A stretch of 64,000 nt of DNA from Ylistrum balloti (taxonomy: Eukaryota): assembly GCF_031769215.1 (NCBI RefSeq), contig NW_026782195.1:992001-1056000 (forward strand). The letters are read 5' to 3'. The notes beneath the pieces are model-generated. The model saw only the letters and a program-made list of their open reading frames with translations. It searched no databases and had not been told where the DNA came from. Positions 1 to 30,173 of this stretch are shown piece by piece; position 1 is the stretch's first letter; every line of letters starts with the position of its first letter. The position numbers and the translations under genes are program-made.

Positions 1-1172
1 AAAATAATGACATTGCTAGCACTATGGTGACTAGTCCTTCTTAATGACGCAATGCCAACCACTATTTCGAAGATGCCGGAAGTTATCAGCCACGGAAAGG
101 AAAACCGCGTATCAGAAATGATATTGATGACGTAACTAGCAAATGTGGTAAAACAAACAATATTCAAGGAATACATTAAAAGTAAATGATCCCTGTGAAT
201 TGATGTATTTGGCGAGTTTGTTTCAGTTTTCAAATTGTCCGGAGATACAAAGTTTGAGCGTTTATAATGTGAAGTTACGTTTGAAAAACAGAAATAAAGA
301 AAAATCAAAGTGAGCAAAACATGAAGAACCCCCGTTCCTTGTACACTAACAAACAAATTAATTATTTCAAACGTAAACATGACCAAACAAATAAGCGAGA
401 CTGCAGCGCATGACCGGAAGTCCTTGCTTGTTAGAGAAGTACCTAGGTAAACGAGAAACACCAACATGAGACCTCCATAACCCGGAAACAAGGTTTCGTG
501 AGCAGAAACATAGTGCTCGGACGATTGATTCTGTGAATAGTTGACCTCTGTCCAAATGTGATTGACCCCAACGCTTGACCAGAGCACTGCCAAACAAAGG
601 ACCACAGACTGAAGAAGCTGTCTGTGTGGGGAGGGTGACGTCACTCCTGTAACATAACACCCAGTTATGTAAAATGTAGTCTTGAATATTTCCCCAACTT
701 AATATAATCTATATCACCAGCTAAAATCTTATCATATGTTTGTAAGAGTGCATATGTTGTGGTATTTGAGACGCAGTGGAATCGGCATTAAACTGTCATA
801 GTAAGTGATTTAAAGATCAAAGTCATAAAAAAAAGTTTCGATGAAAGAAATATATCTTACACAGTGCTAATTAAACAAAATGGAACCATTCTGAAATATT
901 TGGTGGATCAGAATTTAAAATGAGAGGTGAAGAAAGCATATCAAAGTCGTTCACAAAATCAGATATCTATATTACTTATATGTAGACAATAAAAACTTAC
1001 CAGTGAGTAGGATAGCCAATGAGAACACTAACAGCGAAACACCATACGGAATATTGGTTATTACAGCATTGGATCGCTTTGTTGTGATAGTATTGACACT
1101 GGTGAGAGCAAAAAGGAGGCTGACAAGTAAAAATCCGGACGCAGCGGCGGAGTCCACTTCGTTGCCACTCAT
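1..1172 (-). CDS. Multi-repeat GPR1/FUN34/YaaH (SatP/AceTr)-like membrane protein, divergent paralogue of the gene at 1674; 3'-partial. Exons 1172-1001 and 646-<1
   Basis: ATG at 1172 (aaaATG), perfect donor G|gtaagt at 1001/1000, acceptor ttacag|G at 647/646, phases 1/1. The frame stays open to position 1 (about 272 aa: MSGNEVDSAAASGFLLVSLL...GVTSPSPHRQLLQSVVLCLAVLWSSVGVNHIWT...LMYSLNIVCFTTFASYVINIISDTRFSFPWLITSGIFEIVVGIASLRRTSHHS). It aligns by eye to repeats 1 and 2 of the neighbouring gene. Confidence 0.8.
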
Positions 1173-1673
1173 TTTGGTATCGTTTCCACCTCGATTGGAT
1201 CTAGAATGACGCCACACTTATATATCAAAGACAATAAGGTACCAATGGAGGAAACGCCTAATCGGTCATAGGTACGCCATTATTTCATCAAAGAGCGCTT
1301 GGTTTTCTAAAAATACATACAACGGCAGTTTCTTCCTGGTTCGTGAAAGTCGACTATGATTGGTTTTCAGTTATCTATATATATATAAGGGTGGAGTTTT
1401 TAAAATGGTTCAAGGAATGTTTAATTATTTATCATTGTCTAGTTCCGGGTCTTTATATTGCGCTGCCTAAAGAGACATAGATAATATTGTAGTTGGTGGG
1501 CGGGAATTGGGAACGCCCCCTACCATAAATGAAGCCATATTCACTTGAAAAGTACTGGAAAACGGTCATTGATATAAATTGTTGCTTATCGTGTACATAA
1601 GCTATCAAAGAAATCCGAATACACAAAACGACAATTCTGATCGCAAAAGAACATCAAGGTTCTGTGTATAAAG
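1173..1673. promoter_or_regulatory. Putative bidirectional promoter between the two divergent AceTr-like genes
   Basis: 501 bp between opposing ATGs. TATAAAT 1573-1579 (+), TATATAA about 1225-1219 (-), CCAAT about 1242 (+) and about 1359 (-), GGGCGG 1498-1503. Confidence 0.55.
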
Positions 1674-4600
1674 ATGGAGGAGACTCGAACGAGCGGGCGC
1701 GGTGTTCCCTTCGCGTCAATACTATACAGTGAGCCCGGGGCCCTGGGGCTTATGGCCAATATCATGTCTGCCCTGATAGTGGCTATGGGAAACATGACGG
1801 TAGGGGACGAGACAAAACTCACTCTCATCATTGCAGGTAAGCCATACGAATGCTTCTGTTGTTTAGTGTAAAATACATGTATGTGGGAGCTGATGTATTG
1901 GGTTTATAACCACGGAATTAGATATAGAACTAAGTCTGTGATTATAACTCAACAAAACGTTTGTATTTAGGCTTTGGTGTTTATTAATTAGATGTATATC
2001 TATTTTTCACGACTAAATCGATACATATAATGAAATTAGCAACATGTTTGCAAATCAATTTATCTTCAATAGATAGACAGTACCACATATACATATAACA
2101 TATTTGGTAGGAAAACTATGCTTAAATACTTGAAATATTAGTGAAACCTAAAAATACATTTGCTTACTTATTGCAAACGTACTTAAAACGTTGATAGCAG
2201 AGGTATCGAATTGAAACAGGAAATGTACGGTAGCCAAGGTAACGATATATATTATAATCATGTTTGCTGACAAAGCAAGTGAAACGTAGGAGTCATGACG
2301 AGATAATGTAAATATAAACTTTAGCTGTCAATTTTTTTTATTGTGAGCATCATGAAATGTGTCTTGAATTCCAAAACACGTCAAAACGACAAAATTATTT
2401 ACCTAACTTTTACTATAGTGCGCTCTACTAAATAATACGTAATATCAAAGGAATTTTTTTTCCGGAGTAGGGTATTTGCGTTGCCAAATCATTTAATTCA
2501 AAATTAACATATAATTTGAAAATTACACTCATTTTGAAATAATCTTGAAATGGAAAATGTTGTAACTCGACATAATCAAATAAATGCGAGATAGTTTGTG
2601 TTTTATTGTTGTTCATACAAGGGAGATAACTCCAACAGAAAGTAACAATTTCCTCATTCACGTCATTTATTCATTTGTTACTTATTATCTACATATTATA
2701 AACTATGTCAGAAAACCACATACCTTAATTTGAAGAGACCAAGTTGTGTTTATACAGTGTAATATATTGGGACTCGTTATCGTGAAAAAATGTTGTTTTG
2801 ATTCACAATCAAATTTTTTGGAGTACAATATATGAAATATTCACACTTAAATATTTGCTATCAATATTTCTTTTTTAATAACATGGTTTTCAATGCAATG
2901 TAGAATATTCTTATTCTAAAAATAGAACATGTTTTCATCGTTATTTCACGCTTTTCAGTCGATAATCGGTAAAACTCTGAGACAAAATGTTTGTTTCTGA
3001 AGGGTCTCGATCAAGATATAATTTCATCAATTTTTTTTGACATTTAATATACTTAATTTTCAAGGCATAACTTGATTTTGATTTACTCAAAGAAGTTCAG
3101 ATGTAAATATAATAAATACAGTAAAGATCACGTGTCACTGTTTCATGATTGTCGGTATGAACAAGAAGACTGTAACGCGGATGTTACCGAGCGCTTTTCT
3201 TCTGTGTTCAACACTGAAATTATCAATCCCCCTTAAGTTCCGCAGATAGCTGTGATGATTCAAAGGCAAATGAAGAAATGTTCTTTATAGTGAATAAAAC
3301 GATATATGTGTCACCACGACATCTGTTGCATTTTAAGGCTAAATTTGTTATAAAAAACATCAAGAAATACCAGCATGGCAACATAATGATGATTCAAACT
3401 CAAATTTCATACAACTAGGACAAAATATTAACAAAAGTTAGGTTTACACGAAGACTTTTGAAAACGAACAGGGAGAATAAGAGCAAGTGTTCCGGAAGAG
3501 TGAGCGTCTTCTGCATCATCGACGACACTTGCCATGTAAACCTTGGTTAATCCAAGTAAGTTGTGTCACTTTCTCAAATGAGAACAAGGTATACAACAAC
3601 GGAACCAACAGGCAAACTAACGAGCATCAAATACGTCCAGCTTCACGTCGCACAAAGAAATAGAATATATCTCAACGAGATCACTTTTTCAGCTTATAAA
3701 TCTTCCCCATAATTTTCATCAACCTGCATCTTTTGAACCCTTGAGTGACGAGTTTGTCAGTCAGGTGACGACGTCTTGCAGGAAATCGTGATAATTGGAA
3801 GAGGCCCTTAAATATCGAATCAACTGTGATATGTAAATATCATATGCTGGTATAGAATGTTACAGTAACGTCTAGCGACAATTGATATATACTTTATTGC
3901 TTTCAAATTATTGTAGTCTAATGTTATATCAATGTAATACAGACAAAACATTTACTTGTAGGTGTCCATCTGATACTGATAGGGGGATTTCTTCAACTGG
4001 TGGCTGGACTCTTGTCCTTCAGAAGAAATGACCACCTAACTGGAACAGCCTTTGTAGTATTCGCCTCCCTGTGGTCATTCCAAGGAATAACGTACATACT
4101 GACCACAGACATACCGGACCTAAATGGAGCTGTCCTGTCTGGTCTGGTAGGCTACATGACCGTAGCAGTGGTTCTCTTTGTCTGCTCCTTGTTCGTCAAC
4201 TATATTCTACCTCCTGTACTAGCTGCGATGCTACTTACATTAGTATTTGAAGCCGCAGGTTTATTCTTCCTTTGGGCAAAGAGGGTAGCAGCTGCCTTTG
4301 AACTTTTCATTGTCTTCACGGCCGTGTATGCTGTCGTTGTCATGACCACCAAGGGCGTCAGCCAGAGGTATGTTTTACCGGGGTTCGGAAACGCACCCAT
4401 CGATCCCTTACTTATCCGAACATCGGCCATAGGTAAAAAGAAGAACGAAAAAAGAAAGAATACAAAGTATGCGGAGCCGATGGGTTTGGGATACCTTGCC
4501 AATATCGTGCCAGCTGCTGTGCTGAGTTTCTATAGCCTGGGATATTTCACTGACTTCAGGCCTGCAATGGGTCCCTTGATGTGCAGCAGTCTTTGTCACA

Positions 4601-7600
4601 TTGTTTCTAGTTACTATGCCTTCTTAAGACAAGACTACTTCCATTCTGTACAATTCATCTCATACTTCATCTTCTGGATCAGCCGAGGAGCCGAAGCATT
4701 TCTCGTAACCTTTGACATTTCAGGCGATGCAGACACCATTTTAGATTACTACGGTCTGTGGGGTATGGTGTTGGTTCTTGTTGCAATATTGGTGGCTTCG
4801 ACAACGCAGAGTGTCGTTGTTTTCCTTTACAATCTCCTCTTAACAGTCATAGCCATTCTATCTGTGGAGCATATACCTGGATCAGTTCGTAACTACACGT
4901 TTGGGGTGTCGTCTGCTGTCCTCGCTCTCGCCAGCGTATACATCTCGATCGCACATCTTCTAAACTCAACAGCGGAGAAGGCTGTTGTCTATGTGGGACC
5001 AGAAATCATAGCTGCCGAGAAACTTCAACGTGCCTTTGGATGTTTCCAGTGAGTAAGACCTTTAAGTACAATATGTGTGAAATTGTCTTATATCGCAATT
5101 ACTGTTCGCATTGTTGCTTTTTTTATGAGAATTTGTCAATGTTCTACTGAATTCAAACAAGATAACCATGTATATGTTTTAGTTTGAAAAAAAGAATTCG
5201 GATTAATATTCGAAAGGAAGATTTTAAATGTACATATTATCATTTATATCGCATTAACAATCCTTAACGGCGACATTCAACTTCAACAAAAACTACTGCT
5301 TCTAAAGAATCTGTGTTTGAACTGTTACATGATATTTGATATCAAATCACACCTTACATTTTCTAATCAAGTAAAAAGACAGAAGAAATTGATGAATCAT
5401 GCGGTCCAATGGACAGCGATAAAGACTTAAATATGGTGGATTCCGTAGCCTTTCTAGCCAACATGGTGGCTTCCGTGGCGTTATCTCCCGCCGAGGTCTC
5501 AGATGGACAGAGTGCTCTCCCTTGGCTTCTTGTGGCGGGGGTATTCATCAACATATACTGCGCACGCCTTGCATATGCTGCCGGAAGTTTGGCCAGAGCT
5601 TTCATGATGGTAGTTCTGGCACTTCTATGGGGAACATGGTCTCTGGTGTTTCTGGAAGGTATAAAATACTAGCACCACAGATGTAATGGTTCTATACTTT
5701 ATTATCAACGTGTTCAATACATCAGGTTTTTATGATCACGTCTACAAAATATCACGGTAATTGACTTAATTCAATATATATTCTGAAACCACACGCACTT
5801 CATGTAAATGTTATTGTGTAATGACTGAATTATATATTTAATATTGTACAGGCATCGAGGTGTCCCAGACAAAGGCTGCTGCAATAGGTCTGCTTTGTTT
5901 ACACACATTTTCAATGCTGATGACAACCACATTCTCCAGGGTGTGGATGGTTTTCGGTTTGAGTGTGGAGATAAACATTATAGCTCTCGTGCTCCAAGTT
6001 TTCGATGTAAGCAGTCAGTACATGGCACTGATCACGTCGCTTCTCGTTGGTAAGTATGTCACATAACCGTTCGAATTGTTGTACCCTATTTCTTTGTGAC
6101 CTTCATCAAGCGACTTCTTTGTACACAATTAAAAATTAAAACTGATTTCGTTCAAAGTTTGGTTCCGGGATCCATTCAACATAGCAAACATCAATCTATA
6201 TTATAGAAAGAAAACAGTAAGAGTGGGTGAAAAAATTGCTTGCTTATCAAGAAAAAATTAAATTGTGTCAATGAATATAATTGTTACGTGTCATCATTAT
6301 TTCTGTCTCCATATGTTTTAGGTATTGTTGGATTGTACGGAACTCTCTCGGGAATCTTGAAGGGAGTCATTGACAGTGATGCGTTACCAAAAGGCAAGCC
6401 CATCATAAAGGTACATGCTAACTTAAACAAGCTAAATTAGTTTATATCATTTATCACTGTAATACAAACAGTGTCACAATATCTCATATTTAATTATCTC
6501 ACACATTAAAAAAACAATTATCACGTAGAAATATTAGAATTATTTTTTAGCTATGACTGAACCTAAATTTGGCCATCAGATATGATTCCTCATGGGAAAG
6601 CAACATTTTTTCTTTCATAAAATATGGAAATTTGTGGCCGAGGAAATCGTTAATGAACTGTTTTCTAAAAAAAATCATTTAGCCTAAAGAAGAGACACAG
6701 GAGGAGAAATTGCCTTGCCAAATGATTCCCTCGCGAAAATCTTCTGCCCTTTGGAAGGCAGCCAAACTCCTTGACGAAGGCCACGTGATCGGTGTACCAA
6801 CAGACACGGTGTACGCCCTGGCATCATCATGTAAGGTTCCCAAGTCTGTCAGTGATATCTACCACATCAAGGGCAGGCCAGCCGAGAAACCTATCTGTCT
6901 TTGTATATCAAACCTTGACCAATTGAAAGAGGCAAATCCTCCGTTCAGGTACTGCATGTGTTTCTATTCGAGTCTAAATTTAACAGGCCTGTGTTGTTTA
7001 ACAGCTACACACGTATAAGTTGATGATAAAATGTTAAAATTTTGCCACAAGCAAATCAATGTTACTATTGAAGCGAAATTACATGAATTGTTCCTCGATC
7101 CTGTCTTGCAACGATAAAGATGAGATCTTAATTATATTCATTTGTTTTGAAAACAAAACATTCAAGCTACATTGGTTTATTTAGCGATCTTCTGTGGCGG
7201 TTTATGGACAAATGTTACCCCGGGGGCATCACCTGTGTGGTACCGAAGGGGGAGTGGCTAGCGAGGCTAGGAGTGGGTGATGCTGTCGAGTACGTTGGAA
7301 CTAAAGAAAGCGTGGCTATCCGAGTACCCGACTCTTCTGTGCTCTCCTACCTCACAAGCATTTCTGGTCCTGTGGCCTTGACCTCGGCCAATCCAAGCGG
7401 GGAACCAGACAGTTTACATCACGATAGGGTTATAGACACACTAGGTATGCACTAGTGATTGACTGACATCAATAACCCTTCTGTTGACATTTTCACAAAT
7501 TCATAATTAACGATAATATATATAGTGTATTATGCCGGTTCTTGAAGATCTCAAAAAGGTTATGGAAACGCATATGTTAGCGGACACTTAAATATTTGTC

Positions 7601-8427
7601 TCTTTATGATCGCAGTGTACAACCATCAGAGTAAATCCTGACACCAAAACATTCTAGTACATTACTGATAAACAATTATGATAAATTTATATGTTGATAA
7701 GCAAATGAAGTGTGTTCAGTCAGCCGAATCAAAAGTGGATTTGGTTGTTGGAATTTTTTTCTTGATCCAATATTAAAAACAACATTCTTAATGATGTCAA
7801 ATTATGTAATACTAAAAGGAGGTTACAAAATGTTTCTATCTATTTTTCAAAGGACACAAACTAGCAGCGGTAATCTGTGATGATGAATCTAACGAAATAG
7901 TGGCATCAACTGTCGTCAACTGTGCCAAGATAGATGAAGGTAAATGACTCGTTTTTCGTTGTTCATCAGTGTCAAGTGAGATAAAAAAATAACAACTTTT
8001 GTCGCTCAGCTAGTCACCCCTGTCAACAAAAGTCGCCAAGTGAAGTTCAATTGTTAACTGCCTTGTGACTAGGAGATCACATATAGCTTAGTGGAATACA
8101 TTTAATGAGTCACTGCTGACATAAACAATCGTTAATTTGATTCTAGATATTAAGGTCCCTTGTGTTTTGATATAGGAACATTAATTAATTAGAAAACTAA
8201 TCCGTCCCTGCCTTGTAACCAGCTAAAGGCAAAATTAATTCCGATGTCTTTCAAAAAAGTACGTATATTTTGTCAAACTGGTTGATATTTCAGGTGTGAT
8301 TTCCTACTTTCGGATAGGCTGTGTCCCGAAGGAGCGCGTGGACCGATTGTTCGAACAAGCCAAATCAGAAATAAATGGGGAGGCGACGACAGTTAACATG
8401 AGTCAACAATCACTACACTTATCCTGA
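1674..8427 (+). CDS. About 856-aa fusion protein: three tandem GPR1/FUN34/YaaH (SatP/AceTr) domains plus a C-terminal YrdC/Sua5 domain. Exons 1674-1836, 3962-5048, 5372-5658, 5852-6049, 6322-6410, 6683-6948, 7185-7444, 7853-7939, 8294-8427
   Basis: All eight introns are GT-AG with matching phases (1,2,1,1,0,2,1,1). CDS is 2571 nt with no internal stop. Repeat 1 SEPGALGLMAN...GGFLQLVAGLLSFRRNDHLTGTAFVVFASLW matches SatP ANPAPLGLMGF...[31 protein letters not shown] (SatP recalled from memory). Repeat 2 starts KYAEPMGLGYLAN, repeat 3 MVDSVAFLAN. Each repeat ends in a SatP-like tail (YVLPGFG / VVYVGPEII / ALPKGKPII). Confidence 0.85.
3473..3830 (-). mobile_element. Interspersed repeat fragment (family A; probable non-LTR/Penelope-like element end) in intron 1
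   Basis: Near-identical block AGAACAAGGTATACAACAACGGAACCAACAGG.AAACTAACGAGCATCAAA.ACGTCCAGCTTCA shared with about 31137-31200; diverged copy at 44595-44910. Class assignment is inference. Confidence 0.7.
6683..8427 (+). CDS. YrdC/Sua5/TsaC (threonylcarbamoyl-AMP synthase-like) domain; exons 6-9 of the fusion gene
   Basis: Family motifs in order: GHVIGVPTDTVYAL, IYHIKGRPAEKP (KxR), YPGGIT, VAIRVP, LTSANPSG (SxN), STVVN, RIG. Confidence 0.92.
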
Positions 8428-10129: not shown

Positions 10130-14214
<4,085 letters not shown>

Positions 14215-28130: not shown

Positions 28131-29116
28131 TTTCATGGATAATAAGATAGAATCATGATCTTTAAAGATGTCGATATTTTCCTAATATTTCAAAGTCACG
28201 TGATCATTATAATTTGGAAAAGGGGAGAAATAATCTGACATCCACCTTGTACTTTCAGACTCTCAGACTGATTTCATCAAAATGCAACATTCATGGAGCT
28301 GAGAACATCCTGAGATGTCCACAAGGTATACTTATTCATTCTGTAAACATGTTCACCACGATCCAGACCATTGATTCACAGCTTTCAAATTGACTTTAAG
28401 AAAAACTTCAGTTTGACTTACTTTCGTGTCTTGTATTAAAATAAACGCTTGGACACTTAATTCAGTGTAAGAGATTAGTGGTAATAGTCAGTAATTGTGT
28501 TTGAATTTAGACTACATTGTGCTTACAAACTTCAACAGTCCGAGTTACCTAATAACTGACAAGCCACCAAAGGGACGCTAATCTTAAGTCTTAAATAGCG
28601 CGACGCTTTCATGCATTGAAAACAATTTGTCCTGTCTATATTATCGTATTGTTTTTAATACTACACCATGTTTCCTTATTAACGTTATACATTATTGTTA
28701 AAAATCAGCCCATTTCATACCTTCTGACTTAAGGATTTCTACTCTTTATTCTTTTGTATGTCGATTTCGTCCGACTTGCCAAAATTATCAGTTTGCCTTT
28801 GCATTACGCCAACAAGAGGAAGACCGAAATCTTTCTATATAAAAGTTCTATATCTTTAAATATGATATATATATATAAGCCGATCACAGAAATTTCGACG
28901 CAGCATTGATAATGATTTGTACAATTAGATAGAGGTGACTTGACAATGCCGTCAGTACTCACATTAAGAAGGAACAAGAAAAGAGAAACTCAATAATTGG
29001 TTAAGGAGTCATAGTAGAACCTCTGTAAATTAATTGCCCATTTTTTGCCTTCAGTAAAAAGAAAGACTCTAAGATGTTTACAGGGATGTTTGCCATATTT
29101 TACGTCAAGCACGAAC

Positions 29117-30173
29117 ATGACATCGTTCCGATCAAGACTGGAAGGTTATGGTGGCGGTAGTGTGGATCTCACTAAGGACGTGGCTGATGGCATTGCTATC
29201 GTCACCCTTAACAACCCGGACAAGAAAAATGCTTTATCAGGTAGATCCAGAAATTATGATCGCCAGTTAACCAGAAACTTTTACATATAAGCAGGCATAA
29301 GACAGTAATGTAATATTATTTACCAAATAAAATCAGTATTGTTTTATATTCTATATTAACGTCATAGTAATATTTCTGAAAGTAACGGAGAAAGCAGCCT
29401 TTAGTGAACACATTTTGTTTGCTTTCGTTTGATATTGTTGAAAAATCAGCTATCGCACTCTTGCAGGTAAAATGATGCTTGATTTCCGCAATGTGGTCGA
29501 AGAATTGGAAACATGGGATGATGGAAAAGGTGTGATATTAACGGGGTCACAGAGAACATTTTGTTCTGGAGGTGATTTAACCACTGTTCAGAACATTCTG
29601 ACATCAGAGCAGGGTTATGAAATGGCAGAATTCATGCACGAAACATTGACACGGCTTCATCGACTGCCGTTGGTCAGTATGGCTCTTGTTCAAGGTAACG
29701 CAATTGGAGGAGGGGCCGAGCTTACCACAGCTTGTGACTTTCGTGTGATGACCAACACGGCCCGTATTGGGTTCGTACAGATGAAGATGGGTGTCTTGAC
29801 AGGATGGGGAGGGGCGACAAGGCTTGTTGGATTGGTAGGTCGTTCAAGAGCTCTGGACATATTGTGTTCCTCTAGACTGCTTTCTTCTCAGGAGTGTCTC
29901 AGACAAGGCTTGATAGATCACATCATTCCCTTACAACCGCCCAAAGAGGAGAGTATCGAGGAGGATGAGGTTACCCTGAGGATCGGTCGTGCTTGGCTGA
30001 GTCAGTACTGTCACGCGGATGTGAATCTGGTGAGGGATATGAAGACAGTGGTGATAGAGGCTTGTGAGTCGGACTATATCTCCTCACTAGAAAAAGAACG
30101 TGCTATATTTAGTAAGACATGGGGAGGACCTGCTCAGAAAAGAGCACTTGATCTAAATATTAAACATTCTTGA
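29117..30173 (+). CDS. ECHDC1: Ethylmalonyl-CoA decarboxylase (crotonase superfamily). Exons 29117(or 29055)-29240 and 29467-30173; at least 276 aa
   Basis: GGGSVDLTKD..GIAIVTLNNPDKKNALSG|KMML...WDDGKGVILTG...FCSGGDL...LPLVSMALVQGNAIGGGAELTTACDFR...MGVLTGWGGATRL...WGGPAQKRAL. The C-terminal WGGPA is characteristic of ECHDC1. Phase 1/1 intron; true start uncertain. Confidence 0.9.

Follow-up and report, generated by a model that had tools for sequence, protein, structure and literature searches.

The window, a 64,000-nt stretch of the Ylistrum balloti genome, was found to begin with two genes in head-to-head orientation. Positions 1 to 1172 of the minus strand hold the 5' end of the gene studied here, referred to as the candidate, and a paralogue lies next to it on the plus strand (1674..8427). 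The start codons of the two genes, at 1172 (-) and 1674 (+), are separated by an unstranded spacer of 501 bp (1173..1673), which is presumed to be a bidirectional promoter region. The public model of the neighbour encodes 855 aa, with three AceTr-like repeats and a YrdC domain carrying the motif KGR, and the language-model features of this gene were nearest to PF01184 clusters. Its description is based on the gene call on the fetched locus L001, on a CDS rebuilt from the window as nine exons, and on tblastn with family members. The best-splice chain of the rebuilt gene gave 856 aa, and an alternative with weaker sites (5645|5869 and 6006|6252) gave exactly 855 aa. Exons 3-5 of the public model (5645-6410) may be slightly wrong or alternatively spliced; all comparisons between candidate and neighbour reported here are independent of these disputed junctions. 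Within intron 1 of the neighbour, positions 3400-3800 of the window showed a word depth of about 19,000-71,000 in DNA run X1, compared to about 11 elsewhere, and many short contigs with irregular joints. This segment looks like a very high-copy repeat, either a transposon or a satellite fragment.

Exon 1 of the candidate (1001..1172, minus strand), as read from the sequence, is 172 nt long, or 57 codons plus 1 nt, and starts with an ATG at 1172-1170. Its translation (MSGNEVDS...AILLT+G) is mostly hydrophobic and equals residues 1-57 of a public protein, P0001. An exon 1 of 57-59 codons is likewise present in Pecten, Mizuhopecten, Pinctada, Patella and Octopus. Intron 1 (647..1000, minus strand; 354 nt, phase 1) has the donor GTAAGT at 1000-995 and an acceptor, ...TTACAG, that ends at 647, with its AG at 648-647 preceded by a pyrimidine-rich tract. 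Exon 2 begins at 646, the split codon G|GA encodes Gly, and the frame is then open from 644 to 1, where it leaves the window after 214 codons. This 5' part of a giant exon (1..646, minus strand) corresponds to P0001 residues 59-272; the exon extends 1,062 nt past the left edge of the window, to residue 627, and occupies L001 10528-12235. The joined product of exons 1 and 2 is letter-identical to residues 1-272 of P0001 (898 aa), the best of 13 proteins retrieved when the 214-codon piece was searched exhaustively with HMMER. P0001 is present in NCBI, UniRef and nr and is coded on a 2.1-Mb contig of assembly GCA_031769215.1.

The initial annotation had proposed a splice from 1172-1001 to 646-1 that yields an open, hydrophobic frame, and the consensus donor, the AG acceptor and the identity to P0001 all agree with it. 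It had also described the gene as hidden. This is true of the open reading frame list, from which the correct frame is missing because frames running off the source sequence are not listed, but the public annotation already uses exactly this junction and its model omits exactly the intron 1 stretch. The one frame that is listed here, a 97-aa ORF at 367..660 (minus strand), is an artefact in the wrong frame, as had been suspected; the true open frame is the adjacent one. Simple ORF lists, as a reminder for genome annotation, miss frames that leave the window edge. Extension to the left, suggested there as a check for three repeats and a YrdC domain, completed repeat 2 and added another repeat of six helices, the third, as well as the YrdC domain. 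The gene has six exons at L001, namely exon 1 (172 nt), exon 2 (residues 59-627) and four more for residues 628-898, and all 898 codons are intact with no break in the frame.

Transcript evidence was found in a related bivalve. Its Logan contig L002 (run SRR23580857) is 3,403 nt long, has an uninterrupted 894-codon ORF and is collinear with exons 2-6, and the alignment breaks at the four downstream introns (introns 2-5). The DNA alignment of this contig to the window ends within 6 nt of the 646 acceptor, and its protein is continuous over the exon 1/2 junction (LAILLTVVTSSSP vs LAILLTGVTSPSP). The sole run containing the stretch itself is genomic DNA, since its contig crosses intron 1. The predicted 1001|646 junction is, therefore, supported by annotation, by conservation and by the transcript of a relative that codes across the equivalent junction.

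The protein was modeled with AF2 from an 80-sequence alignment (pLDDT 77.8, pTM 0.74). The model has 18 transmembrane helices in three six-helix bundles, at residues 6-190, 210-369 and 428-588, with low-confidence linkers between them; an alpha/beta domain and then a disordered tail follow the third bundle. Unit 1 lies wholly inside the window, and of unit 2 the window includes the first two helices and a third of the next. Exon 1 codes for the first transmembrane helix and most of the second, and residues 59-195 (234..646, minus strand; helices 3-6) complete a six-helix AceTr/UreI-like unit, the helices of which lie at 6-31, 40-60, 67-94, 106-128, 132-156 and 161-190 with a pLDDT of mostly about 90. 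Repeat 2 starts at residues ~207-272 (1..200, minus strand) with helices 1 and 2 and the start of helix 3, modeled at 210-230, 237-261 and 264-290. At least two tandem repeats had been claimed from the window, and AF2 and hhalign gave three in total, the third of them beyond the window edge. Repeats 2 and 3 matched each other well by hhalign (E=7e-12 to 3e-14), and repeat 1 was marginal against repeats 2 and 3 within the candidate clade (profile E=0.003 and 0.03).

Structural searches related these units to two known channels. In an exhaustive VIA-align search with repeat 1, the urea channel UreI (3ux4) was the top match (Z=15.3, 155 aligned residues, 2.8 Å), followed by SatP (5ys3; Z=15.0, 170/188 residues, 3.2 Å), and the lower matches included a designed six-helix barrel (13.4) and TMEM45A (11.3). 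Foldseek with the repeat 1 model alone listed only a weak UreI match, and SatP was absent from that list. The full model matched SatP by Foldseek with a target-normalised TM score of 0.75-0.80 and an rmsd of about 3 Å. Through repeat 3, the 80-member family profile matched SatP structures 5zug (E=4e-9 to 6e-10) and 5ys3 (E=3e-7), and with a profile of repeat 3 the match spans SatP residues 38-189 of 190. Within this match are the segment GG.Q...G, the FLY-constriction Tyr and the C-terminal LPxG. The Tyr is retained in repeat 3, where LLYASFW aligns to TSYGSFW; by register with the invariant Trp, repeats 1 and 2 have Leu and Phe, respectively, at this position.

Pfam was less informative for the membrane part. 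No match to PF01184 was found on the 898-aa protein at E<=1 and no membrane family exceeded its threshold, and Pfam searches of the window pieces returned nothing useful; several orthologues carry a precomputed PF01184 assignment. Repeat 1 is the weakest case among the three AceTr-like units, and its link to AceTr runs through the neighbour, as the two first repeats match each other (hhalign E=2.8e-8) and repeat 1 of the neighbour matches repeat 3 of the candidate (E=2.5e-11). The candidate thus resembles the SatP/YaaH acetate-succinate channel (AceTr; PDB 5ZUG, 5YS3) in its six-helix unit, with repeat 3 matching nearly the whole SatP chain. Unlike SatP, it has three units covalently joined to one another and to a soluble domain, and its repeats 1 and 2 lack most of the signature residues. 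Helicobacter pylori UreI (PDB 3UX4, 6NSJ) shares the six-helix fold of the hexamer-forming type, but there is no detectable sequence relationship and the resemblance is at the level of the fold.

The soluble part lies to the left of the window, on L001, and was identified as a Sua5/YciO/YrdC domain (PF01300) at residues 628-808, with E=2.3e-31 and 109 bits against a cut-off of 25. Foldseek matched this part to Sua5/TsaC2 (E=7e-9, ~1e-8) over ~220 columns at an rmsd of 3.6 Å. By phmmer the E value was 1.7e-15, and that of the family profile against Sua5/TsaC was 9e-18. The K-x-R/S-x-N tetrad of TsaC/Sua5 is essential for ATP binding (PMC6004061). The corresponding motifs of the candidate are K663-T-L665 and S756-A-N758. 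Among the 77 of the 80 clade members that the count lists, residue 665 is Q, L, D, H or S, and R was not reported there. Three features do not vary in the clade: the Lys, the SxN, and an Arg placed four residues further along. The neighbour has the canonical K-G-R. In its PF01300 fold, SxN motif and invariant Lys, the candidate is like the TsaC/Sua5/YRDC TC-AMP synthases; it differs from them in the missing Arg of KxR and in the tethering of the domain to a membrane protein. Because this Arg is missing across the clade, we did not file the domain as a TC-AMP synthase. A tRNA-modification activity seems doubtful, and a ligand-binding, sensing or regulatory module is more likely. The asymmetric loss of this residue, with the candidate clade lacking the Arg that the neighbour has, appears to be new.

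The relationship between candidate and neighbour was examined by pairwise and profile comparisons. Full-length BLASTP aligned candidate residues 197-829 with neighbour residues 213-836 at 27.9% identity (E=2.7e-78). With the membrane parts only, E was 1e-17, and candidate residues 197-395 aligned with repeat 2 of the neighbour; BLASTP of the in-window fragment against the big 350-aa exon of the neighbour was not significant (E=26). By hhalign, candidate residues 1-272 matched residues 1-290 of the neighbour clade, for which a profile was built on six neighbour orthologues, with a probability of 98% and E=4.6e-14 over 248 collinear columns. When the units were compared singly, the repeat 2 pair (E=1.1e-12) and the repeat 3 pair (E=5.7e-17) matched as the repeat 1 pair did, and in each case the corresponding repeat was the best match. 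Repeat 1 of the candidate was not significant against repeats 2 or 3 of the neighbour. This one-to-one correspondence indicates that the triplication of the unit preceded the duplication of the gene.

These comparisons confirm the paralogy that the initial annotation had drawn from short motif pairs. Two of the pairs, LAVLWSSVGVNHIWT/FASLWSFQGITYILT and TLFPGYGGLMLV/AVLSGLVGYMTV, were reproduced in a family-guided MAFFT alignment and by hhalign, and the third, LMYSLNIV...ASLRR/LGYLANIV...AFLRQ, was recovered by BLASTP too. The first intron of the candidate had been placed about 15 codons later than that of the neighbour, and the offset was found to be 14 codons. Both first introns are in phase 1 inside a Gly codon. 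The candidate has five introns and the neighbour eight, with almost no positions in common. The architecture and the repeat-by-repeat homology are common to the two genes; they differ in sequence (~25-28% identity overall) and in repeat 1, where the neighbour has an AceTr-like GGFLQ..AG..F. The candidate had been called the highly diverged copy, a description that fits its first repeat alone; by its YrdC part (60-65% identity to chordates) and its exon structure, it is the copy with clear orthologues in chordates. Over its first 290 residues, the scallop candidate is just 25-31% identical to that of oyster, limpet or octopus, compared to 49-60% for exons 1-2 of the neighbour over a similar mollusc span (loci L003-L007). 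The rates are, thus, asymmetric: the membrane start of the candidate evolves faster, yet its YrdC part is nearer to chordates.

The YrdC part, used as a query, retrieved 406 proteins with lengths of 494-1,571 aa. Scallops ranked first (86-88%), ahead of pearl oyster, limpet, snails, oysters and cephalopods (59-71%), and these were followed by amphioxus and almost all vertebrate classes other than mammals (58-66% over the YrdC part). The best hits in molluscs, amphioxus and vertebrates all had E<1e-82. The exon plan, with a short exon 1, an exon 2 of ~570 codons and junctions near residues 627, 657, 711 and 779, is common to Pecten, Mizuhopecten, Patella and Octopus, and to amphioxus and zebrafish in the parts that could be mapped. 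On sequence, on exon structure and on the tree described below, in which the chordate members group apart from the neighbour clade, the gene that we identify as orthologous to chordate Ato-YrdC (zebrafish si:ch211-153b23.4), and as the conserved copy, is the candidate and not the neighbour. The Ato-YrdC family was described as vertebrate Ato proteins in which three transport domains are fused to a Sua5/YciO/YrdC domain (iScience 2026, PMC13316224; bioRxiv 10.1101/2025.05.26.656167). The same study proposes that two such chains pair to imitate the hexamer of SatP, and it suggests horizontal transfer for the few protostome members (PMC13316224). The candidate matches the metazoan and vertebrate Ato-YrdC proteins, with their three Gpr1/Fun34/YaaH domains, in its length of ~900 aa, its C-terminal PF01300 domain and its exon structure. 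It differs in being a mollusc member and in having a head-to-head paralogue, which is absent from that description. Given the breadth of the family in bivalves, gastropods and cephalopods and the introns shared with chordates, vertical descent would fit the mollusc members better than horizontal transfer. No literature match was found for the mollusc LOC identifiers. Mentions of the zebrafish orthologue were confined to gene lists, among them the figure legend of a Shigella-infection RNA-seq study. As the gene is already public as uncharacterised and the family was published in 2025-26, we regard the finding as sound but fairly ordinary, and its novelty as modest.

The head-to-head arrangement is not limited to Y. 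balloti. A divergent upstream YrdC-bearing paralogue of 843-870 aa was also found in the bivalves Pecten maximus, Mizuhopecten yessoensis, Pinctada imbricata and Saccostrea echinata and in a limpet, Patella vulgata; the CDS-to-CDS spacers in these five molluscs are 412-880 bp. The old head-to-head duplication that had been suspected is, therefore, upheld by an orientation kept in five other genera, and its presence in both bivalves and a limpet places the duplication before the bivalve-gastropod split. This deep conservation of a divergent paralogue pair in molluscs appears to be new. In amphioxus, zebrafish and Octopus, the 10 kb upstream of the candidate-type gene contained no called partner. 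In Saccostrea echinata, two contigs (L007 and the contig of P0021) each carry a candidate-type gene; the two genes, of 836 and 837 aa, are nearly identical and represent either a recent duplication or uncollapsed haplotypes.

Some other genes around these loci were also recorded. A glyoxalase-domain (PF00903) gene lies just past the neighbour, at ~13792-14208 of the window (minus strand; L001 1-1043). In amphioxus, a glyoxalase gene is head-to-head with the candidate-type gene and a PhyH-domain gene adjoins the glyoxalase gene, and in zebrafish the upstream neighbour of the candidate-type gene is a DJ-1/PfpI-like gene; these observations are on L008 4236-8390 and L009 5799-8581. In the Shigella-infection legend, si:ch211-153b23.4 and a PhyH-domain-like gene are in the same list. 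These genes may reflect a repeated association with the metabolism of small carbonyls or carboxylates. Further along the window, at 29472-30173 (plus strand), the ORF list contains a crotonase/enoyl-CoA-hydratase-like open frame (GGGAEL...ACDFR), with a likely upstream exon at 29045-29290; it is probably an ECH-family gene.

Selection on the candidate was estimated from the in-window part of exon 2 against three pectinid orthologues (Pecten maximus, Mizuhopecten yessoensis and a third pectinid-like transcript). The dN/dS was 0.14-0.25 at a dS of 0.7-1.2, and the codons evolve under purifying selection. This result bears on the alternative to a working gene, in which the open frame belongs to a pseudogene in decay or the model is over-predicted, a view to which the purely genomic origin of the only run with this stretch in the species and the fast evolution of the first repeat relative to other mollusc orders could lend some weight. 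Besides the dN/dS, however, it would have to accommodate 898 intact codons across six exons, full-length orthologues in more than 100 species, chordates included, a spliced transcript in a related bivalve and a confident AF2 model. We judge it very improbable and reject it. With a probability of about 0.9, positions 1-1172 of the minus strand comprise the first exon and first intron of a functional pectinid scallop gene together with the initial 646 nt of its exon 2, and this gene codes for an 898-residue, 18-helix protein with a triple AceTr part and a YrdC domain, is the mollusc orthologue of chordate Ato-YrdC and stands head-to-head with a diverged paralogue. How far back the two copies separated is harder to judge. 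In an unrooted ML tree of 39 sequences, the neighbour clade (support 100) fell outside a group of amphioxus, vertebrates and the mollusc candidate clade. This topology and the near absence of common intron positions suggest that the duplication is older than the protostome-deuterostome split and that the neighbour type was later lost in chordates. The branch of the neighbour clade is very long, however, at 2.4 changes per site, and its placement may reflect long-branch attraction; grouping the neighbour with the mollusc candidate clade was not rejected by the AU test (p=0.06). The lack of a called partner upstream of the genes in amphioxus, zebrafish and Octopus, and the physical adjacency of the two genes, which itself suggests a local duplication, also speak against such an early date. 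In the alternative account, the gene was duplicated in inverted tandem on the stem of the molluscs, and the neighbour then evolved fast. We hold the older date tentatively, at slightly under even odds.

The candidate has three six-helix units of the SatP/UreI fold and a cytosolic YrdC-type domain. In the related families, each SatP unit forms a narrow anion pore and the units assemble as hexamers. By analogy, three fused units would make up half of a SatP-like hexameric ring, which two chains could close, and the candidate channel would conduct small carboxylates or similar anions. Its YrdC domain, with the Arg of KxR lost, would act as a ligand-binding or regulatory module. The shared 501-bp spacer probably co-regulates both genes, and since the head-to-head layout is conserved, co-regulation of the paralogues, and possibly a mixed complex, is a reasonable hypothesis. 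A stricter version, in which the paralogues are obligate partners in a hetero-hexameric SatP-like ring (3+3 units), with the intact KxR/SxN of the neighbour making its YrdC domain catalytic or ATP-binding and that of the candidate a degenerate regulatory partner, seems unlikely to us. If it were true, the short shared promoter, older than the bivalve-gastropod split, would enforce equal dosage of the two proteins. It is about an even chance that the paralogues are instead independent, each forming a homodimer, and that their layout is a relic of the duplication with no functional meaning. The candidate type apparently can work alone, as no adjacent partner was called for it in Octopus, amphioxus or zebrafish, but the retention of the orientation and of a short spacer in six genera of bivalves and a limpet would be unusual if it were neutral.

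Animal AceTr-YrdC fusions were recognised only in 2025-26 and are without an assigned function or substrate. Molluscs carry two ancient versions of them, locked head-to-head. The two paralogues differ exactly at the residue that YrdC enzymes need for ATP binding, and this pair would offer a natural contrast for deciding whether the fused domain serves as an enzyme or as a sensor.
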